From: Penicillus capitatus
Lineage: Eukaryota > Plantae > Chlorophyta
Length of the DNA: 64,000 nucleotides
NCBI GenBank assembly: GCA_965649825.1
Contig: OZ287704.1
Location: 976,301 to 1,040,300, forward strand
Direction: 5' to 3'
Shown here: piece after piece, positions 1,039 to 61,764 of the stretch
Position numbering within the stretch: position 1 is the first letter of the stretch
Layout of the letters: the number at the start of each line of letters is the position of its first letter
Position numbers and translations under genes: made by a program
Notes under the pieces: generated by a model
What the model saw: the letters and a program-made list of their open reading frames with translations, nothing else
Told to the model about the DNA's origin: nothing
Database searches by the model: none

Positions 1039-1695
1039 GGTGGTTGTAATGAAGACGAAGCTCCGTGCGTTCGTGCTGTATTTTGCTTCTCATTTACAGA
1101 CTATGTACGTCATGCAGCGAATGACCAGCCAATGATTATTGCAAACACCAGAAGCAAAAAACAAAACGGATTACCTTCGAGGGCAACAGAACATTTGATC
1201 TTCTTGTTCTTTATCTCTCTTACGATTATCATTTCAGAGATCCATTTCTTAGGAATTCGCTCGAGATGAGTCTCGTCTTGTAGATAAGAGATCGATGGAT
1301 TCACCGGCAATCTCCTATACCGAAAGTTTCTTTACTGTTACTTCTCACTGGAGCAGCGAGACCATGTCGTTAAGCCTGTGAATAGATCTTAGTCTACTCT
1401 TTGGCATTCACGGAGACGATAACGTGTCTCCGATGTTCAATGTGCTCGTATGCAGATTCAGATGGAGGGACCGTGCTGCTAAGTTGAATGACAAGGACAC
1501 AGTGGAGCATCCCGAGGCATGCTGCTGTGCCTCCTCGGACAGGTCATTTTTTTCATCTAATCGTTTTCTACGTCCCATCACGATGAACATTAGAACGACG
1601 ACGCCATTTGAAAGCGAACATACACACGTTTTGTCGAGTCCGTTCTCCGTCTCTGTCACCGATTCGCACCGATCGTTCGTTACGTCAAATTCGCG

Positions 1696-4600
1696 ATGAC
1701 GTTCGGAAGTAGCGGAGGACGCGAGTACTTCTACGACAACGAAACGATGCATCTCTTGGAGGATTTGCGCGGTTTCTATGGTGGGCGCGATTATTCGCAC
1801 ACATGCACCAAAGCGCTGAGACTTTTCAGTCTCCATCTCCAGCCCGTCGTCGACGTTTTCCTCCAGAAGGACTTGGGCGACTCCCGAACTTTTGTCGTCA
1901 AAGCGAAACCGTGGACAGAGAAGGATTTCGTATCGTTGCTTCCAAAACACGTTCGTTCGTTTACGAATGGCGATTGGCGATTGGCCGAGTACTTTAAACG
2001 TCATGCGAGTCAGTTGGACATGCTCACGTGCCGACGAGGTGGACCCGGATCGACATTGGTCGAAGCACTGCAGTACATATCGGTGCGTCTTTTGCGCATC
2101 GAATAGGAATTGAAACGACGCGGTGTACTCATATAGGTCATCCGTTCCCTCGTCAAGGTTTTTCCCGAGAGAATCGAAGCCGACGAGGGAGAAGACGTTT
2201 CGAAAGAGGAGATGGAAGAAGCAGAACAGAATTTGCGCAGAGGCAAGGCGGCGATTCACGATGTCTATCAGGAGATAAAACATGAGATTCTGGATGAACT
2301 TGATGCAGACAGAAGAGGATACGAGCGAGAGTCATTTAGTAAGACACCAATCGCCATTGATAGTTGCCTCAAAGGCCGAGATTCTGTACAGGACGCGAAG
2401 ACAGTAGAGACAGCACTGGCTTTCGAGAGTCCATGCGAAGTGTGCCCATGCGCCATGGGTCAGGTGACAGAAATGATCCGAGAAACGATGGGTTCTCGAG
2501 GCAATTATCTGATCGTCACAGGGATGAAGGTAGACAGTACATCACAAACCTGGATGCAAATGAAAGGCAATTGGGATGTGTAGGATACGGCAGTGGCGAT
2601 TTCGGCGAAAGGCGAGGACATTGGAATGCCGATCATGAAGGATCAATGGCTCGCGGATACGAACAGCAGCAGCGAAGCAAGCGAGATCGACCCCTTCATC
2701 GTTCGAGAACAGACAGTCCAGGTGCGTCGTCTCTTGTTTCTGACCGGATCTATTCTGACGTTAGCATTGAGTGGCAGAGTATGGGGATAGAAGAGATAGA
2801 TTTAGCAGCGGGTGGGATGCTCAGTCGCCACCCGAAAGGGACAGGGGTCCATTCTACAGCACCCATCCCAGTGATGGACAACGATACCACTCAGGTCCGA
2901 TTGTTGCGATGTTTTGTACCTTACTGAGTGAGATGGTAGGATATTGTGGTGAGTCGGGTGCTGGCAACAGGGGATGGGGTTCAGCAGCCAAGGGTTCAGA
3001 AAGGTTCAATGATCATGGTCCAGTAGATAGCCATTCGCCGAGAAGAGATGTGTCTTATGATGGAGGGATGAGCAGTGGCATGCATTTGCCGAGACGTCCA
3101 CCACGCAGTGGGGCGCCACAAGGACCTTCTCGATCCGCATCTGGAGGTGTTTCTCGAGATAATATGACCGGATTGCGCGCGACGAGTCGTGGGGAGCTAG
3201 GACGCTCATTCAGCGACGCAGATCGTGCCCGTTACGAGAGATCGTCGACTTGGGAATCTCGTGAAGATGAGCAGTTTAGGCAGAGAGGATCTGCGCCGGG
3301 AAGAAAGCTCTCGGAGCGGAGGGGTTTTGGAAAACCGTATGGCAACAGACAGGCGCTGGACAGATCTGCATCTTCCGAACATCATGAGACACTTGGAGAG
3401 ATATCTCGTGGACATGGATGGGCCACAACTGCAGCCACTGCACAAGATAGAAAGGGATGGGGAACTGCATCAAGGAGTACAAGAAGACATGGACAGGGAG
3501 GTTCAGTGAAGCAGGAGCCGAGCGAGAATCCGTGGGGAGGCCCCGTGAAACAGAAAGCTCCAAACGAGAATCCATGGGGAAGTGCGGCAACGCAGGAGCA
3601 GCCTGCCCAGAACCCATGGGGAGGAAGAAGTGCGACCCAGCAGGAGCCGCCGGCCCAGAACCCGTGGGGAGGCAGTGCAGCCAAGCAGCAGCCAGTAGCC
3701 CGACAGGAGCAGCCGGCCCAGAACCAGTGGGGAGGCAGTGCGACCCACCAGGAGCAGCCGGTCCAGAACCCATGGGGAGGCAGTGCAACCAAGCAGGAGC
3801 CGCCGGCCCGACAGGAGCTGTCGGCCCAAAACCCGTGGGGAGGCAGTGCAACCAAGCAGGAGCAGCCGGCCCAGAACCCGTGGGGAGGCAGTGCAACCAA
3901 GCAGGAGCAGCCGGCCCAGAACCCGTGGGGAGGCAGCGCAGCCAAGCAGGAGCCAGCAGCCCGACAGGAGCAGCCGGCCCAGAACCCGTGGGGAGGCAGT
4001 GCAGCTACGCAGGAGTCGCCGGTTCAGAATCCATGGGGAGGCAGTACAACCACACAGGATCCGCCAACCCGACAGGAGCAGCCGGCCCAGAATCCATGGG
4101 GAGGCGGTGCGGCAACGCAGGAGCAGCCGGCCCAAAATGTGTGGGGCCAGACGATGAGTGAAACGGGCGGTGATCAGGAAATGAAGGACGAGCCGCCGCC
4201 AAAGGCAATGCACTTGCCTGTCGTTAAAGAAACAGATCTTGACACACAGCCGCAAGCTAGCGAAGGATCATCTGAAAACAATGCTCAGAGAACAGGCTTT
4301 CCTGGTGTGCCTATCACCGCAGAACAGTCTTTATGCAATCCATCTGTGGACGAGAATGAAGAGACAACCGTTACTCAAGACAATCCATGGGCACAGAAGA
4401 CACAAGGACAATCTGAGAATCGGGACAATCAATGGACACCGTCATTCTCACCTCAGACAGTGTTTGCGAATCCATGGTGTTCCAAGGTAGAGTCTCCTGC
4501 TGTGTCGACACAGGCGATGTCGATCAGCTCAAGCATGCCAGATATGGCAGAAGAAGTTCAGAAGGACCCTCAAACCCAAGTCAACGATCAGCAGCCGTGG

Positions 4601-5116
4601 GGATCAAGCAACACCTCTACAGTGACAGGAAACATGGCAGGCACTTCGAGCCCATCAGACAAGCAGCCAGTCAATCCATGGTGTCCATCGGCTCAGTCAT
4701 CAACCTTTGGCAGCCAGTTCGGCAGGGTGAGCAGTGCACCCACAAATCTCAACGGCGCCAATCCTTGGAATTCGCAACCGCAGCAAGACACGTCGACATG
4801 GAATACAGCGGATGCAATGCGGAGATCCGATCCACCCACAGAGATCAGCAACTTTAATTCCACGTTGCCGTTCCACAGGACAGAAGATGAAAAGCACATC
4901 AGTGCCTCGCCAGAGACGGAGTCGAAAGACAGTAGTAGTGTCGCTTTCGGTACCCGGAGGCTCAAACCGCCTCCAGGTTTTGAAGGATCAGTGAGAAGAA
5001 CGGCATCGATGCCACCATCCAGTATCGGCCACAGTTCTGCCGAAGAACAACAGAACAGTCTACCAAGATTGGACATCATACAAGACAACGACGATTCGCG
5101 CCCTCCCGGGATTTGA
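1696..5116 (+). CDS. Multi-exon protein: unassigned ~200-aa N-terminal domain, R/D/G/S-rich linker, reiterated WG/GW repeats, C-terminal PPPGF/PPGI motifs
   Basis: ORFs 1696-2106, 2212-2340, 2391-2750 and 2771-5116 join in frame through short GT-AG introns (about 2083-2136, 2340-2390, 2529-2582, 2896-2940). About 13 tandem (N/Q)PWG(G/S) motifs lie at 3520-4150, with further GW/WG motifs elsewhere. Confidence 0.75.
3520..4150 (+). repeat. Coding tandem repeat (about 45- and 63-nt units) encoding QNPWGGSATKQEQPA-like units
   Basis: Repeated cagaacccgtggggaggcagtgcaaccaagcaggagcagccggcc and variants are visible directly. Confidence 0.95.
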
Positions 5117-5206
5117 TTGATTGATGCGTCTGCTTTGATCGAAAAAAAGAAACTGACACCAGACCATACAATAACATCCTGCTTTTCCCAGGACGTGAAT
5201 GTACAG

Positions 5207-6265
5207 TTACGCAGACAAGGGCTTTTTGGAACACATTGGAGCGAATCTCTTTTTTGTCGGACATTGCTGGAAACAAGGCGTTTGCAGAATCGGATCTTCC
5301 GTTTCTGGCAACGGCTTTCTGCCAAAACAGAACCTGAATAAGAAAATCATGACTATATCCTTTTCTTTGCACAAGCGGGTTTACTGGCAGCTGAAGTCTT
5401 CATAGTTTGGTTCGAGGGCGACGTCGATTCCCATTTCTTCTTTGAAAAAATCCTGTGTCCAAGAGTGGATGTGAGCAGAGACGACGGATTGAGGATTTTG
5501 GACTTGGGTTGGCAGTTTACAGCTGTTGTGGCAAATCGAAGCGCATCCACTTTCTTCAAGGAAACGACATCTTTCCACAAGGACGCCTTGTCCATGTCCT
5601 ATCTAATGAAATGAAATATCTCTTCTTTTCTGTCCTTGTTTACGGTCCGTTGCACCTCTCCATTGTTCATTTCAATGTCATTCACTTCCATGGATCCCAT
5701 AAGCCACGTACAGGCCACACTTGTTGTCCAGGCATTAATTCTGGCAGAGATCTGAGGGAAAGGCTGCGAGATACACAACTGCAACAGAAACAGAGGTGCG
5801 TGCCATGATGTGACAGCAGAATAGTCGCACATTGACAGCTGCAGTGAACCAGACAGGAAAGAGGGAATGGAGCACTGCTGCCGCTTTCTCTCTTGTCTCG
5901 GCAGGTGTGTTCATGCGAGGATCGTTAAGGCGACGCGCTAAATCAATGATCCCTTCGAATCTAGACGTTAGATCCACAAAATAATAAACGGCCATCTGCG
6001 TGACTCACCCTTCCAGTGGTGAATCCTTTCCTCCGGCAGCTTCTACCAAGGCTTTTCTGAAGACTGTCATCAGTACACGATTCAGAGGCGATCTCTCAAA
6101 AACAGTGTGATCGGGCTTTGCTGTCTTAGGTCCTGCATCTATCAAGATATCATATTTCGGCGTCGCAGCGTGTCTCAGCCATCCCGATGCTCTCACACTG
6201 CCTGAGCACTTTTGGTGGTGGGCCGTTTGGTGATGTGTTCGGAAAGAGACCGCTCGATGATGCAT
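5207..6265 (-). CDS. D27: Beta-carotene isomerase D27-like protein (DUF4033), probably plastid-targeted
   Basis: Exons read ERCRFLEESGCASICHNSCKLPTQ, FFKEEMGIDVALEPNYEDFSCQFCFGRKP and TPCFQQCP, the Cys-rich D27 signature. TAA stop at 5207-5209; the N-terminus is transit-peptide-like. Confidence 0.85.
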
Positions 6266-6455
6266 GGCGCGAGCGGATCGAAGTCTGCGGCTTGGGTGAT
6301 GTGCAATGTGATGTGACCTTCGGTGAGACGTCGTGTCACTCGGGTCCTCTTCGTCTTCCAGCTCCCGATGAACTTCACAGACAAACCGTCTTTACAAGTT
6401 ACGTATTCTGAGCTGCATGTGTACGCATTACGCCCTTTTGCCGACGCTGAAGTAA

Positions 6456-8728
6456 ATGTGTGACATAAAGAGCAAAACTACTGAGTATGGCGAAGGAAGC
6501 TCCCCTTCGGCACCACCCATATCGGCCGCATTCGGAGGTCTGTCATCTCTGAGTACCACATGAACGCACGAACTTCTGCTTTTGGTAGAAACGGTGTACC
6601 CGTCATGCACTCCGTTGCCTCCAACGAACATGACACTATCAAGTACAGGAGAACGGTTGTCTTGATATCTGTCTCGAGAGTGATAAACAGGGGATAGTCA
6701 TTTGGTGAGAGATTTGTTGCGGAAAGCCGATGGAGATACTGTAAAAGTGGCGAGCTGGTTGGAAACTATGGGTGAAAGTGTGACGCCTGCTGAATTGCAG
6801 AGAGAACTGGAAATGTGTGATATGCATGCTCAAGGCGATGATATCGACACCATCGCCGCTCAGCTGGGAGCACCCGAAACGTACTTCTGTCCAGTTTCAT
6901 TTCATCTCTTTCGAGACCCTGTCCTTCTCCAAACTGGCCAAACGTAACCCTATATCGCATTGTGTAAGACGGCATATCAGCAAAGCGTGATGCAGATATG
7001 AGAGAAGTGTGATTCAACGTTGGTTATCCGAAGGCGGTTCCATCTGTCCCAATACTGGAATCGAGCTTCCAACTCCTGTCGTTCTTACACCGAACGTTGC
7101 TCTGCGCCATGCCATCGAAGAATGGGCGCAGAAATATGCAGAATGGATGCTGGTCTGTCCTCGTCTTGATCGACACCGTCGTTGCTGATGTGGTAGATGC
7201 AGGGACCCAATGGAAGAATATTGCCACTGCCTTCAGATAGGCACAACCGCAATCAGCCGCTGCTGTTCCAGCCAGCCATTACCGAAGGGGTCGAAGAAAT
7301 CCCGATAAGAATTCGAGAAGATGTCAACCACCACCGACGTGGTCGTGCACAGTATCGTCAACACCACATTGAAATGTGACGCACACACTCCACCATCGCA
7401 CTCTTCTCATGGTCGGTCTTCTGTAGGACTCAGTCTCAGTACGACCGCATTCGACGTTGTGTCTTCTTACTCTTTATGATCACCGTCGCGCATTTCGTTC
7501 TCTTTGTTATTACCCTGAATTCAGGGGACTGGAAGGTGAGGAGACAGAATCCCGATGACATGACAGGAGTGCAAACGTGGTTCTGTGATGCAGTTTGCCA
7601 AGATTGATGATAATCCGCTGATTGGATTTGAAGCCAATACGATTCGTCGAACAGGAGGAACGGATACCTATTTGATATCGGAAAGAAATGAATGGTGGAG
7701 AATGGCGACCTCTGCTCTGATGACGAGTGGCATCATTCATTTACAATGGGTGGTGTGTTGTCTCTGGACATGTGGACGATTTCTGGCGGCGCGCATGTCA
7801 TTCGTCTCACTCGGGCTGCTCTACGTGATCAGCTCCCTCTGCGGCGTCCTGCTTTCTGCCAATTTCTCTATCGTCTCTGAAGGAACGGGTGGATCTGCTG
7901 GCGCCTTCGGATTCATTGGTAAGGGAGCCGTGTCGATTGAAGCCGAAATGATGATCGTGATGTGACAGGAGCTGTTATGGTCGAAACGCTTGTTCATCGC
8001 AAGCACTACCGTCATCACTTCACTTCCATTTTCTTCCTGACCCTCATTGCCTCTGTCGGGATCCTGATGGGAACGACGCCGCTTGTGGATAACTGGACAA
8101 ATCTGGGCGGCTTTGTTGGCGGTTTCTCCATGGCCATGGCACTCAGATTGACGCATCGAGCTCTGCAAGGATCTGCTCCCTACATCGAAGGCTTCATGGT
8201 CGTCTTCCAAGTCTTCTGGTTTTTACTCGTCGGCTGTTTTGTCGTTGGCGGATGCATCGGCATCTTCCTCAACAAGGACAGTCGACAAGAGTGCAATTGG
8301 TGTCGGCAGCTCACTTGCGTCGACATGAATTGGTGGGATTGCGATGTCGCTGTCCTTCCTCCCGATGATTATCAGCTCAAATGCGAGTATGATATCAAAG
8401 GCAATCTGACAGCCACCATCCTCTGCCCATCGGTAACGCGCTCGCTCTCTTTTCACGCAGATTTCATTTTTGCGTACAGGGGAGAAATGAAACGGTACAG
8501 TTGGGAGATGCTTCGACAAAGGATCTCAACAGAAAACTCGATCAGGAATGTCAGAAGACGTGTGCCGATACCTCGACACATAACTCCAAGGACAAAAAGT
8601 CCCCCGTTTCAAGTCGCCCTCCTTCTATCCCGATCAACCGACCTCCGGACGCAAATCCAGTGAGATCCGAAGATGATGACGAAAACCAGCTGCGAGAAGG
8701 CAATACCATAATAGACACTCTAGAATAG
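6456..8728 (+). CDS. U-box domain fused to a rhomboid-family membrane domain lacking the catalytic His (predicted pseudoprotease)
   Basis: U-box: PETYFCPVSFHLFRDPVLLQTGQT|YERSVIQRWL...CPNTG...LTPNVALRHAIEEW. It continues in frame via GT-AG introns into rhomboid motifs DNPLIG, EWWR, GGSAGAFG, VDNWTNLGG and CNWCRQLTCV. Confidence 0.85.
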
Positions 8729-9484
8729 AGCAATGAGGTCCCATGATCCTACGGTTGAGGAGGATAGAGGTGTCCGACGTTCACTTGTTTGAACAAAGAT
8801 CGTGTTTCGGAAACATGTAAAACAGACAAGTAGATGGCACGTCATCTCAAGACGCATGCCCATGCTGTGGTCATCATTTGGACTCTGCCAACTCTATCAT
8901 GCTTCTGTAGACAGGCCAACTGCACGGCCGCTGCAGAAACGACATCACACATTGCGTTCCGAATGGTGTCTAGTCATTTTGCTGCTACTGCCGGAATGCA
9001 CTTCGCTGTGAACATCACACGCCATCGTTTATCACACTTATATCACACTTTTCATTTCTCACAGATCATACTGAGTTAGGAACATTTCTTAGGAGACGCA
9101 CATATTTTATAATGCTATCCAGTCCACATCGTTGCACAAGGCGACGCCGATCGACGATGTTGCAAGATCCGTCATTCTTCTGACGAACTTCTGTGGTGTT
9201 TCGCCGCAAGATGAGTCATCCCGCGTCGCTGTTATCCCACCGACTAAAACGAGGTATAGTGACGGGACGCGCAACGATCATTGTATGTTAGACCATCTGA
9301 CATTGTCTGCATTCCACGTCGCACGTGTATTGTTATTCCCATGCGTGACACAAAGAGAAACGAAGTGCATTCGCGTTCGCGTCGTGCCGTCCGTCCACAC
9401 GACAGGCAACACGACGCAAACGGCAACGGACATACGACGCTCGCGGCAACAGAAGAGTCCGGAGGACTCGGTGCGTTCGGTCGT

Positions 9485-12309
9485 ATGAGCATCGACGAAG
9501 ACGAGTTACTCAAATTGCTGAAAAACGAAGTGCCAGGCGAAGATTCGACCTCAGCTGCCGAGAATACCGATTCGCGATCGGTCGAAGACGATATGGCTCG
9601 CGAAAGCTCCGAGTGCTTTGCCGATTTGGAACGGGAACTCTCGGCTGCGCTGAACCGAAGTCAGGAAGAAGAGAATTCAGAACTGCGTCCTCTGACACCG
9701 GAAGATGTCAAAGATGTCTCGAGGACGACAACCCGAGAAGAGACCGTCTCTTCTGGCAGAACGGGAAAAGAATCATCGTCGGCAGATGAGAGCAGCGTGG
9801 AGGGAGAGACTTGTGAGGGCAAGAGAACCAAACGCAAGGCGGAAATGGGATCGAAATCGCCCATGAAGAAAACGAAGTATTATGAAACGAATAATACTGT
9901 ACGGAAGCCGGGATGGGCAGAAGACATGTTAAAAAATCGACCCTCTGTGATGATCTCACAGAAAAATCCAAATCCGTCGTCAACAAGAGCACAGCATCAG
10001 AAAGAACCATTTCATACGAAGAAGACCAGAATCGATCAGGCTTCGATGGAGCCTATTGTTGTTGGAAATGCCTATCACGGAGCACGGCGCAGTGCTCCTG
10101 TGTCCAGAAAGCCAATGATCGACGAGCGTTTTATGCCTCCGGGATGGTTGGACTGTCCAGGTCTCGAAGGCAAATGGGGTATCTTTCTATTCTCCAAGGT
10201 AGAGATGGCATGGATGGGCATTGTTCTCTATGAGAATGTGCATGCCTGTCCAGACGCCTCTGGGAGAGAGATGGAATCATCTGATACCACCCAGCAAGCG
10301 CTATACACCGCAGATGGTTTTGCAGACGGCGGCGAACCGAAGCCAACACGTAGGGCTCGTCTGGACTCTCTCCAGTCTTGCCTATCTGTGTTGTTATTTG
10401 TCAGATTGGTTTGGTCATTGATCTCACCAATTCTTCGCTCTACTACGATCCGTATGAATTCCAGAGGCACGGTGCTCAGTATCACAAGGTTGGATCGTCG
10501 TCCACCGTCTTCCCTTTGGCATGGATCTTGTGGAATGCAGATTCGTTGCCAGGGGCATGGCGCCACTCCAAGTCCGGAAGCTGTCAACGAGTTCTGGTGG
10601 ACGGTCTCCCAATTCGAACGGCGAAGAACGAATCGTTTCATACTGGTCCACTGCACACACGGCTTCAACAGAACAGGCATGTGTCATCTGTCGTGATGCA
10701 TGGTGTGAATAGCAGGGAGTGTTCAGGCTTCATGGTGGCACACTTTACCATGCGTTGGGCTGAGAAAGATACCATCAATGGCATCATCCGAACGTTTGCT
10801 GTACGTAGACCTCCTGGCATCTACAAGAACGAATACATCCAGGAGCTTCTAGAATACTATCACGAACCCAGGTACTCAGAACGCATTCCACGGACTCGTG
10901 GCCAGCGCATCTGGGCAGGAGTTCGAAACTCATCACTCCCTCCGTGCCCGAATGGAAAGGCCTTTCTCATGAGGAGAAAGAAGATGAAGATGCCACAAGG
11001 GAAACAAGCTCACGTTGCTCCGCCCTCCGCCCTCCTCTTTGAGTTTAAGAGGCTGTTGGTTTTGGTTAGGAATGATTGTGCACATGACATCCAGCGAAGC
11101 CATGACACCCGACGATCCAATTGGAGAACGCCTGTTGCCTCGAGAACAGGAGTGTCTGCAGTCTGAGATTCTGACTCTGATGCTGGGCTCTCAGAGGCAT
11201 TACAGTCGATTTCCAGGTGCTCAGCCAGTTTCCATGGATCGCAGTAACCTCGAGCTCCTCGCCAACAAACGGCATTGCCATTCTCAATCGATCTTGCTGT
11301 TGACAATGACTCTGAAGGTACTGGGTGACATACAAGGCAGATGGAACGCGTTACATGTTGTTGCTCATGAAGCATGGCGTGTACGTCATCAACAGAGGCT
11401 TTGAGTTTCAGCGTGTGGAAATGCGATTCCCTGCGGCTTTCAAAAACGATCATACCACCGTCAATCCTGGAATTCCACACCATATGACGCTATTGGATGG
11501 AGAGATGGTCATTGATCACGACCAGGAACGCGGCATCTATACGCGAAAATATCTGGTGTATGATCTGGTATTATATGAAGGTCAATCCTGGATGTCTGTG
11601 CCATGGAAGCAACGCTTTGCTCAGTTGCGCGAGATTGTCAATCTCCGCAATTCAGAAAAATCAATGATCGCAAAGAAACAATCGGCATTTGACTATCAGT
11701 ATCGCGATGAGCCCTTTGAGGTAGAGGCAAAGATGTTCTGGTGCATGGGTCAAGTCGAAGGAATCGTAAAAACCATACCAACGCTGAAGCATGAGTGTGA
11801 CGGGTTCATTTTCCAAGCCTATTGGGATAACTACAAAGTGGGCACACATGAGGAGCTTCTCAAATGGAAGTACGCCCACATGAACTCCGTCGATTTTCGC
11901 TACAGTTACGAAATCAATTCAGAGCGTGAGTCCCTCTACCGCCGCCATGCGCCGCCTTTGATTTCTGTGCCTTCCAGATGACGGGCAGGTTTTTCTGTTG
12001 AACAGGACAGAGGTATTGTGTGATGGGGTCAACGTGGATTTCCCGAATGAGGGGGATAAAGAGAGGTACAATGGAAAGATCATCGAGTGTGCCTATAATC
12101 AACAGACAAATCGATGGATCTTTCTGAGAGAAAGAGTGGACAAGAAGTCGCCAAATGCTTACAGTGTCTACGAGAAAGTGCTCAAAAGCATCAGGGACAA
12201 CATCACCCAGCAGGAGCTTGTGAATAGAATGCTAGATCTGTTTACCGAGTCTGCTATCTATGCTCAAGACAGAGAGAAATTGGCAAATTACAATCCTGTT
12301 AAAAATTAG
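9485..12309 (+). CDS. RNGTT: mRNA capping enzyme (RNA 5'-triphosphatase plus guanylyltransferase)
   Basis: Triphosphatase motifs PPGWLDCP, LVIDLTN and VHCTHGFNRTG. GTase motifs YKADGTRY, LLDGEM, DGFIF, LLKWK, KIIEC and RERVDK. TAG stop at 12307-12309. Confidence 0.95.
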
Positions 12310-26909: not shown

Positions 26910-29900
26910 ATGCCAACGTTCTGTTGTCGACTATTCTGTAGCATGCATCTTTATCGATGCTATTATACTTTGCTCTGTCTGTTGCTATGGAGTCGTCTAA
27001 CCATCCTGACGTCATCGTCAGCCACCGAAGAAGGTACCTGTTCGAGTGAACTAGGTGCAGAGAACATCTCTGAGGGAGGGCAGCAGTACATCGTCCGCTT
27101 TCGCGAATACCGGAGGGCAGCACACTGGAGACGAGCACTGGAAGCTGTCTTAAGCGAAGATGGGTCGCAGTGGAAATGGGTCGAGCGACACAACGCAGCT
27201 GCCTCGTTTCCGACAGACTTCGGCGTCGTGCGATTCCAGACAGCCTCTGCAGAAACCGTGCAGGTAGATCTGAATCGACTTCTCAGTGGTCCTTGGTGGG
27301 ACGTCGGAGTCGTATAGGAACGCATACTCAAGCTGCCTTTTGTCAGAGACGTCCACCCAGACCGTCTGCTGCACCGGAGTCTGGCACACGTCGCGGAGGA
27401 AGAAGAGGGACATCGGGAGTGCAAGATTCAGAAGCCTCCAGGTCGATTCCGTACCCGTCCGACTTTCGGGATCGACAGCGAGGACGACGACTACACGTAT
27501 GGATCGGATTCCGAAGACCGGGCAGAGCTGAGGAGGAAGAGGATGCTCCTAAAAACCGGCCGCCGATCGGTGACGCGAATGCTGCACGCGGACGAGATCT
27601 GGAATCTGGGATACTCGGGCGAAAAGGTCAAGGTGGGCGTTTTCGACACCGGCATCCGAGCAAACCACCCCCACGTCAAGAACATCAAGGAACGCACGAA
27701 CTGGACCCACCAGAACACGCTGAGCGACGGATTGGGACATGGCTCGTTCGTGGCAGGCGTCATCGCCGGAATCTACGATGGATGTCTTGGATTCGCTCCG
27801 GACGTCGAGCTCTACACGTTCAAAGTGTTCACGGACGACCAGGTCTCCTACACGTCCTGGTTCATGGACGCCTTCAACTACGCCATCGTCTCGAAGATGC
27901 AGATCGTCAACCTGAGCATCGGCGGGCCGGACTTCCTCGATCAACCATTCGTCGAGAAGGCGAGATCGCTAGATGCAGTCGCAGTTCTCATGCCTTTTCA
28001 CTCCGCAGGTGCTTGAGGTCACATCGAGTGGGATCATCATGACGGCTGCCATCGGAAACGATGGACCTCTGTACGGGACGCTGAACAACCCGGCTGATCA
28101 GAACGATGTCATCGGAATCGGAGGTATCACCTTCGAGGATCGCATGGCGCGTTTCTCGTCGAGGGGGATGTCGACCTGGGAGCTGCCGATCGGCTACGGT
28201 CGCATCAAGCCGGATGTGCTGGCATACGCCCAGGACGTGAGCGGCTCGAGGATGCAGGACGGGTGCAAGAGCCTGTCGGGAACGAGCGTGGCGTCTCCCG
28301 TCGCCGCAGGGGCTGTGGCTCTGTTGGCCAGCACCGTTCCCGAAGGCGCTCGGTGGAGCCTGCTCAATCCGGCCTCGATGAAGCAGGCCCTGGTCGAGGG
28401 CGCCTCTCGGCTGGACGGCGAGACGGTCTACGTTCAGGGGGCCGGAAAGATCGACCTCGTCCGGTCCATGCAGATCCTGCAGAGCTACGAGCCCCGGGCC
28501 TCCCTCGTTCCCGGCAGCCTGGATCTGACCGACTGCCCGTACATGTGGCCCCTCTGCTCGCAGCCTCTCTATGCCGACGCCGTCCCGGTGATCGTCAACG
28601 CCACGATCCTGAACGGCATCAGCGTCACCGGCGTCCTAGAAGGGGTGCCGGAGTTCGCTCCCTCCAACAAGGCAGGAGAGCTCGTCTCCATGGACTTCGA
28701 GTACAGCGACGTCCTGTGGCCCTGGTCGGGCTACCTGGCCGTCTACGTCCGAGTCCAGTCCGCTGGACGATCCTACTCGGGCGTCGCCGAGGGAGAGATC
28801 CGCTTCACCGTCGTCGCTCCCCCGGTCGAGGGCGAGAGGGGGGAGAGGAAGTCCACTGTCCGAGTGCCGTTCAAGGCGAGGATCGTTCCGAAGCCTCCCC
28901 GAGAGAAGAGGGTGCTCTGGGACCAGTTCCACTCCGTCAAGTATCCGCCCGCCTACTTCCCGCGAGACAACCTCGACGTGCAGAGAGACATCTTGGACTG
29001 GCACGGAGACCACCCGCACACCAACTTCCACGACATGTTCGACCACCTGCGAGACAGGGGTTACTACCTGGAGGTCCTGGGTTCTCCCTACACCTGCTTC
29101 AACGCATCACAGGTCCTGCCTGCCGGACGGCGTCCGGCACACTGCTGACTCCATTCGCTGTAGTACGGGGCGCTGATGATCGTCGACTCCGAAGACGTCT
29201 TCTATCCGGAGGAGGTCGCAAAACTGGCTGCGGATGTGAGGGAAGAGGGACTCGGCGTCATCGTCTTCGCGGAGTGGTACAATGCCAAGACGGCCACGGA
29301 CTTCCGCTTCTTCGATGACAACACGCGCAGCTGGTGGACTCCCGCCACGGGAGGCGGCAACATCCCTGGCCTGAACGACCTGCTTGGCCAGTTTGGGATT
29401 GCCTTCGGGGACGCCGTCCTCAAAGGGACCCAGTCGATCGGCGGCCAGCGCGGGGTGAAGTACTCCTCTGGGGCCAACATTGCAAGGCTGCCTGCTGGCA
29501 GCTTTGCCCACCACTTCTCTCTGGAGGAAACGTCCAAGGAGACCAGCTCCTTCGGCGACTACTACACTCTGGGCCTGACCGCCCATGGGAACGGCAGACT
29601 GGCCGTCTACGGAGATTCCAACTGCCTGGACTCCAGTTACCAGTCGGATCACTGCTTCGAGCTGCTCGATGCGATGCTGGACTTTGTGAACGAGAACGAA
29701 GACAACAGCCTTCTGCAGAGTCTGACAGGCGAGGATCACATACTGAAGGCATCTCTGGACGCAGAGGATCTTCCGCAGCCGATCGAAGACGTCAACTTCA
29801 CAGAGTTCTCTTTTGTCATGAGCCATCCATTACAGTGCTACATGAACCATCCCATCATGGAGATCAACGACGCGCCAGTGAACCGGTCCGACATGGAAAT

Positions 29901-37005: not shown

Positions 37006-38823
37006 GTGGGGAGTTTCAATAACTTAAGCGATTCAGGGTCTGGCCGCATCCTGGCAGGCGAGGCACACAGTGCTGGAGCGTGGGCATTGATGTCTATGGT
37101 CAACAGCGTGACAGTTGTCTCGCGATCAGAGCAGAACCTCGGCCATATGGAGATCTGCAACTTCAATCAACTCACACCCAAGGCACTGGATCTCGTCCGA
37201 GACATTGCATCTGGTTTCGAGAGCGGATTATCACCGGAACGTGGAGAAGAGGGATTCGGTGGCACGTATTTCGTTTCGAACAAACATCGACAAAAGGTTG
37301 CGATTTTTAAACCGTGCGATGAGGAGCCTTTGGCACCTTGCAACCCCAAAGGCTTTGTTGGTCGATCTTTGGGAGACCCGGGTCTGAAGCCGACGGTACG
37401 TGTTGGTGAAGCAGCTTTGAGAGAGGTGGCGGCTTACTTGTTGGATCGTCATCAGTTTGCCAAGGTGCCAACGACTCTGCTGATGCGTGCCAGTCATCCT
37501 GCTTTTAATTATGTACCTGGAGTAGATTCGTCTGGATCCTTGAACGTGTCGCTCTTCTCTGAAGGGGTGTCGTCACAGTTAGATGCTGCAAGACTGCCTA
37601 TGAAACTTGGCTCAGTTCAGGAATTTGTTACGCATCTCTGTGACACAACAGAGATGGGCACATCGAAGTTCACGACAGCCGATGTGCAACGTATCGCCAT
37701 TTTGGACATTCGTTTGTACAACACAGATCGCCACGCTGGCAACATTCTTGTACGAAAAGTCGATGCCAGTCACTCAGCAGAGCCCTTCAAAGAGACAGGC
37801 TTTGAGCTCATCCCGATCGACCATGGCTTTTGCCTTCCCGAAGCTTTGGAGCCTCCGTACTTTGAATGGCAACATTGGTCACAGGCACGATTGCCTCTGG
37901 GGCAGGAAGAGCTGGAATACATTGCCTCTATTGATATCGAAGCCGAGAAGGCGATGTTACGTAAAGAGTTGCCAGTGTTGCGCGAAGAGTCTCTCAGAAC
38001 GATGGAAGTGTCTACTACTCTTCTGAAGAAATGTGCAGCCGCTGGGCTGTCTCTTCATGAAATTGCTGAAATCATGACACGTCCATTGGTCGGAATGGAC
38101 GAAGAGAAATCCGACCTCGAAAAAATCTGTCTCGAAACGAAGGAAGAAGTCATGTCGGCTGCCGTGACTGGATTAGAAATAAGTTGGATATCATCATCAT
38201 CTGACTGCGAGTCCGATGAGTTAGAAAGCAACGAAACGACAACAGCCACTCCAACACGCATAGATGAACTGCTGTTTTGCATAGATGATTTGAAAGAGCT
38301 GGAATCGTCTATCATGATGAATGCCACCGGATCGAACGGACTGTCTACCGATGCAGCAACGGAAACAGTCGTGGCAATGGTTGAGCAGGGACTCGTCGAG
38401 GAGTGCTTACTGGAACAACTGTCCTTGGAGTGTGAGGGGCACCCAATTGCTGAGCCAATTGTGATCAACGTGGGATTAAGGAAAGGCCAAAGATCAATGT
38501 CAATGGCTCTCCCCTCTTCCACTGTCTGTTGCCGACTGCCTAAACGTGGTTATGGTCAACACACCCGACCTGAACATCGTCCTTCTTCTGGGAGTCCCAA
38601 GCAAGGAGAGACAAAAGTTACCTATCCACCTCTCGTTCACGGATCAGCTCCTGGAAGTTCTGATGACGTCTTTCGCTACATGAGCTCAGATCAGTGGAAG
38701 TGCTTCATGGAGGTGCTGTGTGATAAAATTGACGATGGAATAAAGCAGGGAAAATGGGTTTCACATGACATCAAGACCCGTTCCATGTCTATGAATTTGG
38801 GCATTTCCTGTCCCCGTTTCTGA
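37006..38823 (+). CDS. PI4KG: Type II phosphatidylinositol 4-kinase gamma (PI4K-gamma), no N-terminal UBL domain; true start may be ATG 37090
   Basis: GFGGTYF, IFKPCDEEP, EAALREVAAYLLD, KLGSVQEFV, LDIRLYNTDRHAGNIL and PIDHGFCLPE in one 605-aa ORF. Confidence 0.93.
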   Translation: MGSFNNLSDSGSGRILAGEAHSAGAWALMSMVNSVTVVSRSEQNLGHMEICNFNQLTPKALDLVRDIASGFESGLSPERGEEGFGGTYFVSNKHRQKVAIFKPCDEEPLAPCNPKGFVGRSLGDPGLKPTVRVGEAALREVAAYLLDRHQFAKVPTTLLMRASHPAFNYVPGVDSSGSLNVSLFSEGVSSQLDAARLPMKLGSVQEFVTHLCDTTEMGTSKFTTADVQRIAILDIRLYNTDRHAGNILVRKVDASHSAEPFKETGFELIPIDHGFCLPEALEPPYFEWQHWSQARLPLGQEELEYIASIDIEAEKAMLRKELPVLREESLRTMEVSTTLLKKCAAAGLSLHEIAEIMTRPLVGMDEEKSDLEKICLETKEEVMSAAVTGLEISWISSSSDCESDELESNETTTATPTRIDELLFCIDDLKELESSIMMNATGSNGLSTDAATETVVAMVEQGLVEECLLEQLSLECEGHPIAEPIVINVGLRKGQRSMSMALPSSTVCCRLPKRGYGQHTRPEHRPSSGSPKQGETKVTYPPLVHGSAPGSSDDVFRYMSSDQWKCFMEVLCDKIDDGIKQGKWVSHDIKTRSMSMNLGISCPRF

Positions 38824-40787: not shown

Positions 40788-41756
40788 ATGGCACCTGAAG
40801 CTGCTGCAGAGGGATACTATATGACACCGTGCTGCGGTGAGGCAGATATGTCTGGATATTCCAGAACGTCTTCGCCGGATCCAAACGTGTTCTACGACGG
40901 TCACGAAGATAAGCGCGCATACACCGACGGTCGCTGCGCAGGCTCGCAGTATCATTCATGGCCGACACCGGCAGGCTTTACAGCTTATCCGTCAAACGAC
41001 GCAAAGACATACGCACCGTCGCCTTACAGTATGCCGCCACATGGAGTTCCACCAATGCCAGTGCACATGCCATCTGTCCCCTACGGACACGGCGCCGCCG
41101 GACAAATGGTAGCACCACAACCGCCAATGTTTGGCGTGCAAGCTCCACGGACTCCAACACGCACTCGTGCAGACATTACTGATACGTCCTCATCAAATTG
41201 CACTCCGAGAGACCACTATTCGACGGCTATGGATCGACCATCTCCCGTGAAGAGACATGCCCGCAAGCATGATGCTGGACCTCGATTCCCAGTCGTCAAA
41301 ATTCCGGAGGGATTGAAGAAGCAAGGAGGACAACCATCACCAGCGACGTGGCTGAACATGAGAGGCTTCCCACTCAGAGCTGGCAAGCCTGACTGCAAGC
41401 ATTACACTACAAAGGGATGGTGCGCATATGGAACACTCTGCAAATTCAACCACCCGGATAACATGCCAGCGGCAACGATGCCCTATGGGATGGTGCCCTG
41501 CGTTCCTGGATCCCAACCGATGGTAATGAATGGACCCTGGATGGGACTTCACTACCAGTGGAACGGACCATGGAACCAGCATCATCATCAGTCATCGCCT
41601 GCCGTCCCGCATGCCTATCCCCCATACATGTGCCATCCCTGCCATTCCGGCCCTTGCAGTACAGAGTCTGGACATACTGCGATTTCGCATTCGGATGGAA
41701 GAGAGCATGAAAAGGTCACAGTCGACACGGAAACCAGTGCCATGATGTATCATTGA
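40788..41756 (+). CDS. CCCH-type zinc-finger protein (single C-x8-C-x5-C-x3-H finger) in a Pro/Met/Tyr-rich low-complexity context
   Basis: FPLRAGKPDCKHYTTKGWCAYGTLCKFNHP, the plant C3H RNA-binding finger type. Confidence 0.85.
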   Translation: MAPEAAAEGYYMTPCCGEADMSGYSRTSSPDPNVFYDGHEDKRAYTDGRCAGSQYHSWPTPAGFTAYPSNDAKTYAPSPYSMPPHGVPPMPVHMPSVPYGHGAAGQMVAPQPPMFGVQAPRTPTRTRADITDTSSSNCTPRDHYSTAMDRPSPVKRHARKHDAGPRFPVVKIPEGLKKQGGQPSPATWLNMRGFPLRAGKPDCKHYTTKGWCAYGTLCKFNHPDNMPAATMPYGMVPCVPGSQPMVMNGPWMGLHYQWNGPWNQHHHQSSPAVPHAYPPYMCHPCHSGPCSTESGHTAISHSDGREHEKVTVDTETSAMMYH

Positions 41757-42753: not shown

Positions 42754-45706
42754 TTAGACTAATGGATCATGCGACACGGGACGTTCCCGCAGACCGACAA
42801 TGTTGTTTGTTGCAACTGGTTCCACATCCTCCCCATGATCCACACCTTCGCCTCTCTTCTCTATTGCCTGGGGATGAATCGCATCTTCAAAGCTATACAT
42901 CTGAATCTGATCATCCACTGTCTGCCCAGCATTCCCTGCATCAAAGGATTGGGTACTGTAGTCAAATCGTGGCAAGTTTGGCGAAGAAGCAGATCTCCGT
43001 GTATCTATTGCAGGTTCGGTTGGCTGAATCGCCAGTGTGGTTCGTCCCAACGATGGATAGTCAATGCGATTGACGGGGTCCTGTTCGTCATCTGTATCCG
43101 GAATGTCTTGCTCCAGCTGCTGGGGCTTATAGACCACATTTACGCTGTCTAGGTTTCGCTCGGCAGATGTCGATGACAAGAAATACTTCTCTAGGTTTAT
43201 TCCCAGGAACAATTCAATCTGCGCCTGACGATCATTATCTTTGATGATGTTGTTGTATCGTCGCGTGATGGCAATGAAAGAATTCGACGCCCCACTAACG
43301 GTATTCTTCTTGAGCTGGCTGGACTGAGGCTCAAAGATCGTGATCTTGTCAGAATGCATGGCTTGCGATCCGGTGTAGAAGAAAGCATTGCGATCTCCGT
43401 TTTGCAGGAAGACATCGGCAATGCTCGAGAGCGCTTCTGGTAAAACCTTTCTGCGAATCTCATCCACTGTTGCTTCTAACATCGACCAGGCTTCTTTCGA
43501 CAGGATCTCTTCTTTGCAGACGACCCTGAAGGACTTCTTGCTTTCCAAAGAAGTTCTACCGCCTTCAACAGAAGGCTCCGTATCGTCCGGCGGCGGAGAC
43601 CATGTCGTTCTCTTATTCACATGATCGATGTAGTACGTGCATCCCGACACCTCGTCGATCCGAGCTTCCCAGCCAACAGGAAGCGCCTGGCGAAACTGCA
43701 CCTTTGGACGTCGGTGTGAGCGACCAGTCGGTGCGGGCCACGACGGCTTGACATTTTGGCTGGGACTCTGAGACGTGGCAGATCCGGGAAGCAATCCACC
43801 AAACAATCGTTCCCTCAATGTGGGCTTTGCCCGGGGAGGATCTTCCGCTATCTCATCATCCCTTGTCAACACTGCCAACTCGAGTCGGCGACATTGTTCC
43901 ACAAAGACCTGTACCACAGTACTGAAAACGGCGCCGTGGCAAAAGAAACGGACGCACTTGAACGCTAATAAAAAAACTTGCAATGTTGGTTCGATCCAAG
44001 GAATCTGCACAGTTGTACCGCGTGAGCCCTTGTTGCTGTGCACACCAGTGCATTGTGTGCTCTCCAAGCCACTTGGTCTTGGGTGCATCATCCTCTAGAA
44101 TGGCACACAGTTGTCGTAGACATCGCCGACAGGGACATTACTGGAAGGTTGCTTGGAGTAATATCCAGAAGCGAGGCCATGAGCTTGTAGCATTCCTCTC
44201 ATTGTTGTCCACAGGGCTTCAATCAGTCCATGCGTTCCTAGTTGCTTGTCCATTTCATGCCAGTCCAGAGCATAGTAATCGGCCTTCAGCTGGTGCATCT
44301 TTCTTATACTGGAAAGCGCCGTGTCAAAAGCAGCAGCAAGATTAGTTTCTGATCTATTTTTATCAGGGAGTCCTTTTCGCAAGAGACTCACGAAAACGAT
44401 CGGAAATCTGTCAGAAGTCTTCTCCTTTTCGGTCGTTTCCTTCAATTTCTCTTCGATTTCGGGCTTCGGCGAAAAACGCTTCTGCAGTCTTCGAATGTAT
44501 CTGTGAGATGGATTCGTGTATGACCACATCATCATCGAACAGAAAGAGATGCTCACCTCTTACAACCTGCAAACGTTTTTTGCTTTCTTATCACGATTTC
44601 TGCTTCGCCCAATCCGCTGTTCTTGAGATAGACTCCCCAACGGATCGGCACTGTTCCTCGTCTCCACGAGTATCGATTCCACAGTGCCTTTCCGGTATGT
44701 TTGTCTTCTGGTCTCCAGACAATCTGTTCGCATTCGATTTCGTTTCCTGGTTCGCAGAGATCGTTCAATCCACGGGCAATGTAACGGGTTCCGGGGTTCA
44801 GCCGCGATCGACGTGAGAGCAGAACCAAATTGAACGGATCGCCCATTCCATCCTCGAGCTCCCTCGATTCTGCTGTGCCTTGCATCAGAGGGGGACAGCA
44901 ATCATCCAGACAGACAGAACGAAAAGACTCTGTAAGCCATGCATTCCACGTAAACTGCCAAGAGGGTTCTGTGGTCGCATGCTGCGAAGGGAAGGGCCTT
45001 GTCACATCAGCATCTGCACAGTACCAATGCGCTCCGTTGACAGAGAATTCCACAATCTTATTGATATGACCCTCCAACATCTCAAAGTTCACGGTAGCTT
45101 CGTTCTGAACATCATTCGGCAGATCTGCCTAAAGAAAACAGTTCAAGCCCAATTGAGGATAGAGATGAGGATCGCACCTGACAAGGAATTCTGTGCCAAC
45201 GTGCAGCTGTCACTGTCTTGATGCGAACATCTCCAGGGAGAAGAGCCGAGACGCGAGCACGCTCGACCAACAGTAGCAGTCCTGTATTTCCTATCACTGT
45301 GTAACCCAACACAGCTTCACCCTTTCCTTCGACCTACATAACGATGCCTCCCTTCAGGCAGACGAGCAGAAGTGATAACAGACGCACTTGTGCTTGCCCC
45401 TGTCCTTTCAGATACTCTAAAGCCTCATCCTGTCGGTCAGCCTGTGAGCAGGAATGGACGCTGTTGACTTTAATGGCCAACCTTGTTTGGAAAGATGTCA
45501 AGTCCGGGTGTTTGAGTATATTGCAACGCCCCTGAGAGCGAGTCAAAACGCACGAGCACGACGTCCTTTCTAGAATCCACCATGTACCGTCTACTGTTGA
45601 ACACGCCAAGGGCTGACCTCTTGGTACGCGAGATGAGCAGAAAATGTTGCTGTGTTGCTTCGAGGCGGTAGAGCACAACAGCGTCATTCTGCGCCGTGGC
45701 ACTCAT
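42754..45706 (-). CDS. SAC9: SAC-domain phosphoinositide phosphatase with WW domain (SAC9 type)
   Basis: SRRSRLNPGTRYIARGLN, EIECEQIVW, RRGTVPIRWG, the SAC9-type catalytic RYNCADSLDRTN, and WW LPVGWEARIDEVSGCTYYIDHVNKRTTWSPP. Confidence 0.92.
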
Positions 45707-61329: not shown

Positions 61330-61764
61330 GTTTTTTTTTCGTGGGGATGAAAAAAGTTTAAAAGAAATAAAAAGTTTTCTTTTGTTTTTCTGGGCGCGGT
61401 GTCTTGACTACTGCTGCTCTGCTGTTTTCTTTTTTGTGACTTTTGGAGCGTCTCTACATTCGTTTTCGTCATCGTGCACGGGACTGCATTGCCTATTCCT
61501 AATGTGTGCACGTTTATTGCGATCTGGATGTTACGAGGGACCAGACCTAGCAACTAACGTTCTGTTTTGTTTTTGTTGTTTCAGCTGCTGCATAGCTGTT
61601 GTTTTGTGCTGGCGACATTTATAGATGGGAGATCGACTCTTATGTTTGTGCATTTCAGTAATAATTGCGGTCGGACATGTTTTTGAGCTGCGGCGGCTCA
61701 TATGGCGGCGGCACATGCTTTTACTGTGTGGCGGGGAGTACATTTGAGTGGTCATTTCTGTTTT

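Follow-up and report, generated by a model that had tools for sequence, protein, structure and literature searches.

A tryptophan-motif protein of siphonous green algae as a possible analogue of GW182 scaffolds

Background

Animal GW182 proteins link Argonaute to mRNA repression by means of two types of short motif, W-motifs and PPGΦ motifs. The W-motifs bind both the Trp pockets of the Argonaute PIWI domain and the CCR4-NOT complex. GW182 has been reported to be animal-specific, and no GW182/TNRC6 orthologues are said to exist in plants and green algae, which leaves this effector slot open in green algae. Argonaute-mediated translational repression in plants and green algae is described as poorly understood; RNAi triggered by dsRNA works in Bryopsis, and one Argonaute has been reported from Ulva compressa. 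The sequences of GW182 W-motifs change fast while their composition stays the same. The PPGΦ consensus has been described together with the RPPPGL motif of TNRC6, which binds the GYF domains of GIGYF, and with the Phe-type motifs of TTP and ZNF598, which recruit GIGYF-4EHP repressors in animals (PMC10187677).

Results and discussion

The W-motif gene was found at positions 1696-5116 on the forward strand of the window, i.e. the whole analyzed stretch of 64,000 nucleotides. It runs exactly from ATG to TGA in six exons and encodes 1052 aa with no internal stop (Table 1). All five introns are of the GT..AG type, and they were kept, together with every exon length, in the sister-species loci L001 and L003. 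Intron lengths in the window and the sister species were 54/59, 53/49, 54/51, 56/52 and 45/45 nucleotides, and the intron at 2339-2391 was shown by the sister-species alignment. The dN/dS of the gene was 0.25-0.43; the gene is real and under purifying selection. The protein consists of an N-domain of about 196 aa followed by a low-complexity tail of 856 aa containing 26 Trp (3.0%), with ILVMFYC making up only about 11% of the tail. The initial annotation had described a set of Trp motifs in this region and placed them in a disordered tail. Every listed motif was recovered, all in one reading frame on the forward strand, and the six-exon gene spans exactly the region that had been named. The tail is of low complexity, and that of the Caulerpa homologue is predicted to be disordered in its AF2 model.

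Table 1. Features of the W-motif gene and its product, with positions in the window
Feature	Position	Strand	Basis or remark
Exons	1696-2082, 2137-2338, 2392-2529, 2584-2721, 2778-2894, 2940-5116	+	alignment with orthologous loci
Orphan N-domain, aa 1-196	1696-2338 (exons 1-2, intron 2083-2136)	+	predicted all-helical (AF2, low confidence)
R/D/S/G-rich low-complexity region, aa 197-516	2392-3505 (exons 3-6 with introns)	+	sequence
Conserved block LPRRPPRSGAPQGPSRSASGG	3086-3148	+	in R/D/S/G-rich region
Tandem array, 13 Trp motifs, 15- or 21-aa units, aa 517-731	3506-4150	+	consensus QEQPAQNPWGGSA(T/A)K
Trp-free linker	4151-4384	+	conserved in sister species, dN/dS 0.26
Conserved block KAMHLPVVKETDLDT in linker	4202-4246	+	sister-species conservation
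Dispersed Trp motifs	4385-4810	+	DNPWAQ W811, DNQWT W826, ANPWC W840, QQPWG W881, VNPWC W908, ANPWN W937, STWN W948
KPPPGFE, PPGΦ motif, ligand type of Smy2/GIGYF-class GYF domains	4964-4984	+	motif match
RRTASMP	4994-5014	+	regex R[ST]x[ST]xP (14-3-3 mode-1-type), kept in sister species
C-terminal RPPGI, second PPGΦ, final residues of the protein	5099-5113	+	identical in window, L002, L001 and L003

The layout resembles that of GW182/TNRC6 in several respects: a long scaffold, predicted to be disordered, with many Trp in Gly/Ser/Asn-rich contexts at least 10 aa apart, dispersed W-motifs toward the C-terminus, PPGΦ motifs in the C-terminal region (RPPPGL in TNRC6, KPPPGF and RPPGI in the algal protein) and a rapid turnover of W-motifs at conserved composition. 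Unlike GW182, to which it has no sequence homology, the algal protein carries an orphan N-domain that is predicted to be helical. No UBA or RRM domain was found in the window protein (Pfam, E up to 1), and PAM2 was absent from every family member by both a strict and a loose regex. With the plant WG/GW platforms (NRPE1 CTD, SPT5L/KTF1, SUO and the candidates of Karlowski et al. 2010), the algal protein shares Trp repeats that are recognizable by composition only and hypervariable between close species, and it passes the plant-derived dos matrix. It differs from them in having no Pol V, Spt5, BAH or other catalytic or chromatin domain, in a core of NPWG instead of plain WG/GW, and in the presence of PPGΦ. 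The algal PPPGF is of the same Phe-type flavour as the motifs of TTP and ZNF598, whose zinc fingers bind RNA or ribosomes, whereas no recognizable RNA-binding domain was seen in the algal protein.

The site-1 protease encoded in the window gave its best matches to Caulerpa lentillifera (72%), Bryopsis (69%) and Ostreobium (68%), which bears out the green-algal origin assumed initially and supports a bryopsidalean (siphonous) green alga as the host. A search with the full-length W-motif protein returned only three near relatives, none of them named. The relatives amount to a handful among billions of proteins, and a common architecture was present in all with complete sequence. Homologues of the N-domain were limited to Caulerpa lentillifera g2933.t1 (EukProt EP00210_P003071, uncharacterized) and a few metagenome or SRA contigs; in one of these, L005, the N-domain and the R/D-rich region are present and the contig ends before the Trp region. 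An HMMER search with the N-domain against 1.84 billion representatives matched only algal or metagenome relatives. One hit from this search, P0130, is a bacterial repeat protein and was taken as spurious. A profile search with the N-domain alignment gave no further members, and a single-protein scan of JGI metagenomes gave no relative.

The search for chlorophyte orthologues, which had been proposed at the outset, yielded the Caulerpa protein, and no member of the family turned up in the proteomes of Bryopsis and Ostreobium. The protein therefore cannot be a general requirement for RNAi in Bryopsidales. As far as found, the family seems confined to bryopsidalean green algae. The N-domain of the Caulerpa protein is 30% identical over aa 5-192 (HMMER), with a pairwise BLASTP E of 2e-19, and the similarity indicates that it is a true homologue. 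It also has an S/R-rich tail, with 11 Trp (3.1%) and two C-terminal PPGF motifs. It differs in its length of 560 aa, half that of the window protein, in its classical SGWG/GGWG motifs and in having neither NPW nor a long tandem array. Since the Caulerpa motifs are SGWG/GGWG and not NPW, what the family has in common is Trp placed among small residues, a context also seen in AGO hooks.

The AF2 models of the N-domain were helical with low pLDDT values of 43 and 48, and Foldseek searches with these low-confidence models gave no match at E 0.001 or better. Pfam searches of the two protein halves (E up to 1) found no domain, and those of six N-domain sequences (E up to 10) found nothing, with no ENTH, ANTH or VHS signal among them. 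Sequence and profile searches of the PDB with the N-domain likewise returned noise only, the profile search again without ENTH, ANTH or VHS. Two Pfam matches, JetA (E 0.075) and DUF7145 (E 0.097), were dismissed as noise. The initial annotation had stated that the protein lacks Pol V and Spt5 domains, and this held for the whole protein, in which no Pfam domain was found anywhere. It had also named assignment to a known family as an outcome that would speak against an Argonaute adaptor; no such assignment, whether nucleoporin, endocytic or other, came out of the sequence, profile and motif searches.

A small N-domain, predicted to be helical, followed by a long tail gives the protein a superficial likeness to endocytic or trafficking adaptors of the epsin/AP180 type, in which DPW/NPF-like arrays would bind adaptor appendage or EH domains. 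DP[FW] is the appendage-binding motif of adaptors; [DN]PW resembles it, and the relative L004 has five DPW. The window protein, the sister species and Caulerpa, however, have no DP[FW] at all, and the Caulerpa member has GW/WG only. Counts of NPF, FxDxF, WxxF and clathrin-box motifs were zero in all members, none of which gave an ENTH, ANTH or VHS signal, and an adaptor function is considered very improbable. The motif counts also ruled out PAM2, NPF, clathrin-box and FG readings, with 3-6 FG dipeptides and no GLFG per family protein as regards FG nucleoporins.

The proximal part of the tail (aa 197-516) contains the Trp motifs HW256, SGWD W301 (2813-2815), RGWG W340, STWE W432, HGWA W488 and KGWG W501, and all six Trp were kept in the sister species. 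The LPRRPPRS of this region was also found in L004, and a related block in Caulerpa. In the tandem array the Trp lie at aa 526-729 (codons 3533 to 4142), 14-21 aa apart with spacers of Q/E/P/A/S/T, and form 11 NPWG(G/S), one NQWGG and one NVWGQ. Tandem Repeats Finder reported periods of 45, 63 and 108 nt at 3592-4146, with as much as 94% nucleotide identity between units. Array length was found to vary: the near-identical strain L002 has one unit (21 aa) more than the window, two haplotypes or strains of the sister species differ by 75 aa in repeat length, and only three NPWG copies are present at the array site of the sister species. Such recent and variable copies could be explained by a neutral coding minisatellite, in which case the N-domain and the conserved single-copy blocks would carry whatever function the protein has. 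Against this, the core differs between units at synonymous and almost no non-synonymous positions. All 13 units carry N(-2), W and G(+1), and 11 of them carry P(-1). The codons vary, with Asn encoded by AAT (5) or AAC (8) and Pro by CCG (6) or CCA (5). The N-P-W-G core of the array is constrained at the protein level.

The amplified unit differs by lineage: NPWGG in the window, NPWAQTKQ.. in L001 and L003 and KGWNDSYGNDR in L004. In the sister species the expansion took place at the DNPWAQ site, with 11-16 copies, depending on haplotype, of NPWAQTKQ(A/S)P(S/P)EN(Q/R)(E/D). The Trp density of the tail was 3.0-3.4% in all four members of the family, and total Trp numbers were 28, 29, 34 and 28 in the window protein and its three closest relatives. 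Repeat turnover is thus fast and lineage-specific at constant Trp density. Three independent expansions, each of a Trp-containing unit, speak against neutrality, and a purely neutral array is regarded as distinctly unlikely.

Constant Trp density despite full turnover of the repeat sequence would also be expected of a sticker-and-spacer condensate scaffold, in which Trp and the Arg-rich region drive homotypic phase separation and valence, not a partner, is selected. The regular 15-aa spacing, the polar spacers and the R-rich segment upstream would suit such a scaffold. The substitution pattern points elsewhere. In the tail regions alignable with the sister species, Trp was the best kept residue (14/15, vs 66% overall); the one lost Trp was replaced by Leu, and Phe or Tyr was found at none of the 15 positions. 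Together with the protein-level constraint on the flanking N, P and G and the separate conserved PPPGF ligand motif, which argues for specific docking, this makes selection on valence without a partner improbable.

Potential binding of Argonaute was assessed with the WG/GW-seeded dos score of Karlowski et al. 2010, re-implemented from their Table 1 and Methods with a threshold of 6.99 half-bits. The published method combines dos with ics (2.14 or less), and the scores given here represent the dos half only. The two array domains of the window protein scored 43.2 and 44.9 half-bits and so passed, on the dos half, the AGO-hook predictor check suggested in the initial annotation. For shuffled versions of the window protein, the maximum dos averaged 16.3 (sd 5.2, highest 34.9). 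No other window reading frame of 100 aa or more, 206 in all, exceeded 12.2. High dos values were also obtained for L002 (82.6), Caulerpa (58.2 and 41.3) and L004 (47.0 and 44.0). The WG/GW domains of the sister species scored only 18-20 and its expanded NPWAQ repeat has no WG/GW, which weakens the case for Argonaute.

PPPGF was found near the C-terminus in 4/4 complete family members. In place of RPPGI, Caulerpa has a second PPGF (YPPGFG). About 0.1 PPGΦ per protein would be expected by chance from the composition, and two were found in the window protein. The RRTASMP sequence beside PPPGF may represent a possible phospho-switch.

On these grounds the protein is tentatively proposed, at a probability somewhat short of even, to be a lineage-specific W-motif/PPGΦ scaffold of the GW182 type, an analogue and not a homologue, that would couple Argonaute to repression and decay. 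The binding partners, i.e. Argonaute, CCR4-NOT and GYF proteins, and the pathway are all inferred from sequence motifs and precedent. The tail would be multivalent through its short linear motifs, in which about 26 Trp in small polar contexts ([ND]PW[GA], GW, WG), at least 11 aa apart, insert into Trp pockets of partner proteins. Candidate pockets with the best precedents would be Argonaute PIWI and the CAF40/CNOT9-NOT1 module of CCR4-NOT. The C-terminal PPPGF and PPGI may recruit a GYF-domain repressor of the Smy2/GIGYF type, and the R/D/S-rich proximal region and the N-domain could serve in RNA contact, targeting or regulation. Argonaute loaded with small RNA would in this way be coupled to translational repression and mRNA decay, and condensates are possible because of the high valence.

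A scaffold of this kind is favoured by the retention of Trp, by the NPWG core kept through synonymous change and by PPPGF in every complete member, as well as by the amplification of Trp units in three lineages at constant density, the high dos and the predicted disorder of the tail. The presence of an Argonaute in the host is supported indirectly by the RNAi of Bryopsis and the reported Argonaute of Ulva compressa. The scaffold proposal is weakened in general because Trp-rich disordered regions can be found in proteins that have nothing to do with silencing, and because the Bryopsis and Ostreobium proteomes yielded no family member. As to Argonaute in particular, AGO hooks are not known for the strong preference for Asn-Pro ahead of Trp seen here. 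The strict N-P-W-G is also more restricted than a generic GW hook, and its Trp-pocket partner may thus be a protein other than Argonaute.

Such a partner could be CCR4-NOT alone or a reader of N-P-W-G, and the scaffold would then act in mRNA metabolism without small RNAs. This would fit the narrow core of the array, the predominance of [ND]PW in three members, the RNA-associated appearance of the R/D/S-rich region and the occurrence of PPPGF also in the AGO-independent repressors TTP and ZNF598 (PMC10187677). However, the Caulerpa member, with GW/WG only and no NPW, implies that N-P is not required across the family, and AGO-hook composition scores are high throughout the family. A scaffold acting apart from Argonaute is therefore held to be unlikely.

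Conclusion

A further-reaching proposal is that siphonous green algae independently evolved an effector of the GW182 type, in which Argonaute, bound by the NPWG/GW array, would be bridged to CCR4-NOT and, through PPPGF, to a GYF repressor. This is put forward as a doubtful possibility. If true, these algae would have made up by convergence for the GW182 that the green lineage is missing, with a valence tuned by rapid repeat expansion. Both effector motif types of GW182, the W-motifs and PPGΦ, are found here in a protein of unrelated backbone from an RNAi-competent algal order. Should the motifs bind Argonaute, CCR4-NOT and GYF proteins, a miRISC effector would clearly have evolved by convergence, and pull-down and knock-down experiments would have a defined candidate. 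Whatever the function may be, selection in this family has acted on the number of motifs and not on their sequence.

Gene structure and selective constraint

The model of the W-rich gene was built from a locus alignment of the window with a near-identical strain locus (L002, 99% nucleotide identity) and with two loci of a sister species, L001 and L003, which are haplotypes or strains from a single sample. The resulting six-exon gene encodes a protein of 1052 aa with no internal stops. Its ATG and stop codon coincide exactly with the ends, 1696 and 5116, proposed in the initial annotation. The tandem NPWGG-type motifs, flanking GW motifs and isolated Trp motifs described there were likewise present, in a plus-strand ORF of 781 aa (2771-5116). 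Indels that were not a multiple of three were confined, in the window/L001-L003 alignment, to five short segments bounded by GT and AG, with donors of the GT(G/A/C)(C/A)G type and YAG acceptors. All five splice-site pairs and the exon lengths of 387, 202, 138, 138 and 117 nt are kept in the sister species, and its introns differ in length (45-59 nt). Prokaryote-style gene calls on related metagenome contigs run through these introns or break at them.

Nucleotide identity to the sister species was 84-85% in the flanks (1-1095 and 4379-9000) and 75% in the 5' half of the gene (1342-3349). The gene thus changes faster than the surrounding DNA, yet dN/dS stayed below 0.45. By the Nei-Gojobori method the N-domain gave 0.27, the proximal tail 0.25, the linker 0.26 and the distal tail 0.43. 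Judged from its sequence, the W-rich gene is an expressed-type coding gene under selective constraint.

The window, eukaryotic nuclear DNA, has a GC content of about 50%. The best named matches of its site-1-protease (MBTPS1) gene were Caulerpa lentillifera (72%), Bryopsis sp. (69%) and Ostreobium quekettii (68%), with other chlorophytes and land plants ranking below the Bryopsidales. This places the source among the bryopsidalean (siphonous) green algae, in agreement with the green-algal origin assumed earlier. An inverted duplication in the window contains, in each copy, parts of a site-1-protease (MBTPS1/SBT6.1) gene: subtilase, third Ig-like and fourth GATase-like.

Features of the W-rich gene, its product and the window
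Feature	Position	Strand	Remarks
W-rich gene exons	1696-2082, 2137-2338, 2392-2529, 2584-2721, 2778-2894, 2940-5116	+	alignment with L001-L003
W-rich gene introns	2083-2136, 2339-2391, 2530-2583, 2722-2777, 2895-2939	+	45-56 nt each
R/D/S/G-rich stretch	first in tail		six single Trp motifs and block LPRRPPRSGAPQGPSRSASGG
13-unit Trp array	second in tail, aa 517-731
Trp-free linker	after array		block KAMHLPVVKETDLDT
Seven dispersed Trp motifs	after linker
KPPPGFE, RRTASMP, C-terminal RPPGI	tail end, in that order
RRTASMP	4994-5014, aa 1013-1019	+	directly after PPPGF; regex R[ST]x[ST]xP, 14-3-3 mode-1-type; kept in sister species
Rhomboid protease	7962-8660
mRNA capping enzyme catalytic domain	11325-11978
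Inverted duplication	26919-29871 and 52167-55120		98.6% identity over 2954 bp; GC ~0.60 vs ~0.49 in surroundings
PI3/PI4-kinase	37006-38820
CCCH zinc-finger protein	40788-41753
WW-domain protein	42757-44091	-
705-aa ORF	59507-61624		translation Arg/Cys/Pro-rich
105-nt tandem repeat	60594-61310		6.8 copies, 89% matches; within 705-aa ORF
Perfect 30-nt repeat	61764-62051		9.6 copies; just downstream of the 705-aa ORF

Tryptophan motifs of the tail

The N-domain (aa 1-196) was predicted to be all-helical. Two AF2 models were helical at low confidence (pLDDT 43-48) and fold searches from them gave no match; Pfam and PDB-sequence matches were also absent. The remaining 856 residues form a low-complexity tail with about 11% ILVMFYC and 3.0% Trp. 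Its array contains 13 in-frame Trp codons (3533 to 4142) at a spacing of 14-21 residues, in the motifs NPWG(G/S) (11/13), NQWGG (1/13) and NVWGQ (1/13); Tandem Repeats Finder gave periods of 45, 63 and 108 nt over 3592-4146.

Within the array core, N(-2), W and G(+1) were invariant and P(-1) was kept in 11 of 13 units, with spacer residues free to vary. Core codons differed synonymously (Asn AAT 5, AAC 8; Pro CCG 6, CCA 5). Trp was the best-kept residue in alignable tail segments, 14/15 compared to 66% overall. The amplified unit is NPWGG (13 copies) in the window, NPWAQTKQ.. (11 to 16 copies) in the two sister-species sequences, where the window has a single DNPWAQ, and KGWND.. in the more distant locus L004, where the window has a single SGWD. 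Copy number is polymorphic, the window and L002 differing by 21 aa and L001 and L003 by 75 aa. This polymorphism, together with the high identity of the units, would fit a neutral coding minisatellite, but three independent expansions, each of a Trp unit, and core variation that is synonymous only make that unlikely. The evidence points to the Trp motifs as the feature under selection in the tail.

Total Trp was 28, 29, 34 and 28 in the window protein and its three closest relatives, and tail Trp density was 3.0, 3.4, 3.1 and 3.1% in four members. Such constant density and the regular spacing could also suggest a sticker-and-spacer condensate scaffold. This is quite unlikely, as Trp is never swapped for Phe or Tyr, the motif flanks are under constraint and PPPGF is kept. 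AGO-hook regions and the W-motif regions of GW182 have been described as showing this combination of constant valence, free sequence and quick turnover.

Relatives and distribution

A full-length query against 5.8 billion clustered proteins matched strain and sister-species copies only. When the N-domain was searched exhaustively with HMMER against 1.84 billion representatives, four further true relatives emerged. One of them is Caulerpa lentillifera g2933.t1 (P0127, 560 aa, annotated independently). The Bryopsis and Ostreobium proteomes, which are within the searched collections (their MBTPS1 proteins were found there), yielded no member. N-domain residues 5-192 of the Caulerpa protein align at 30% identity (HMMER; pairwise BLASTP E = 2e-19). 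Its S/R-rich tail, predicted to be disordered (AF2 model), has 11 Trp, nearly all in SGWG, GGWG or NGWG, and GPPPGFG and YPPGFG at the end. P0129, encoded on the SRA-derived contig L004 with synteny kept, has about five tandem KGWNDSYGNDR units 3' of the N-domain exon; the next exon (691 aa) carries LPRRPPRS, many [ND]PW[GA] motifs and RFPPPGFES close to its end. In another locus, L005, the N-domain is followed by an R/D/G/Y-rich exon, after which the contig stops. In L001-L004 the opposite strand upstream of the W-rich gene carries a gene that ends in a HECT E3 ligase domain, with head-to-head order conserved even in the distant L004; the homologous flank in the window is 1 to ~1100.

A single-protein scan of the JGI metagenomes turned up no relative. 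The distribution is narrow; the family may be restricted to some of the Bryopsidales, or its gene may lack annotation in Bryopsis and Ostreobium. The orphan N-domain, Trp-rich tail and PPPGF define a small lineage-restricted family, for which the analysis documents the gene, its motifs and the constraint on them, as well as the architecture.

Argonaute-hook score and PPGΦ motif

Scoring of the spliced protein as an AGO hook, suggested in the initial annotation, gave dos scores above the published threshold. The dos scoring and domain extension were re-implemented from Table 1 of Karlowski et al. 2010, with a dec of 8.6 and a threshold of 6.99 half-bits, and all figures are the dos component alone of the two published filters (dos, ics). 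Two domains scored 43.2 and 44.9 in the window protein, merged to 82.6 in L002; Caulerpa gave 58.2 and 41.3, and L004 47.0 and 44.0. Shuffled window protein reached a mean of 16.3 and a maximum of 34.9, and the top score among 206 other window reading frames (100 aa or longer) was 12.2. Sister-species scores were just 18-20 because the large array there is NPWAQ, which is unseeded by WG/GW. The strict N-P-W-G core would favour a W-motif scaffold for a pocket protein other than AGO, an unlikely reading that the NPW-free Caulerpa member weakens. An epsin-like endocytic adaptor was considered and rejected as unlikely: ENTH/ANTH signal, NPF, FxDxF, WxxF and clathrin-box were absent and DPW occurred in L004 only.

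PPPGF was found 30-50 residues from the C-terminus in 4/4 complete members. Window and sister-species sequences terminate in RPPGI; a second PPGF is present in Caulerpa. Simple arithmetic from the window protein composition puts the chance expectation at about 0.1 PPG[FILMV] per 1050 residues. Smy2/GIGYF-class GYF domains have PPGΦ as their consensus ligand; TNRC6A and TNRC6C bind GIGYF1/2 via RPPPGL, TTP and ZNF598 use Phe-type motifs, and motif mutation lowers TNRC6-mediated translational repression (PMC10187677). At the level of sequence motifs, PPGΦ is a second parallel with GW182, beyond those drawn in the initial annotation. The adjacent RRTASMP could be a phospho-switch acting on this putative GYF ligand.

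A candidate GW182 analogue

Trp pockets in Argonaute PIWI and in CAF40/CNOT9-NOT1 are established for animal proteins. We tentatively regard the W-rich protein, at somewhat less than an even chance, as a multivalent docking scaffold with Trp-pocket and GYF-domain partners, all of which we infer. On this reading, the Trp side chains would dock in pockets of Argonaute PIWI and/or CAF40/CNOT9-NOT1, PPPGF would bring in a repressor with a GYF domain, and the combination would amount to a GW182 analogue on an unrelated backbone. The PPGΦ motif and W-rich composition are all that is shared with GW182/TNRC6, whereas sequence homology, UBA, RRM and PAM2, each tested, were absent. The protein is thus a works-like candidate outside that family. 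It is neither NRPE1 nor SPT5L and belongs to no Pfam family, which bears out the earlier view that it is not a known plant AGO hook. By kind it would belong with the W-motif/AGO-hook scaffolds, with a candidate function.

RNAi triggered by dsRNA is functional in Bryopsis (PMC12961179), one Argonaute and four Dicers are reported from Ulva compressa, and GW182 orthologues are stated to be absent from green algae. The finding bears on translational repression by green-lineage Argonautes.
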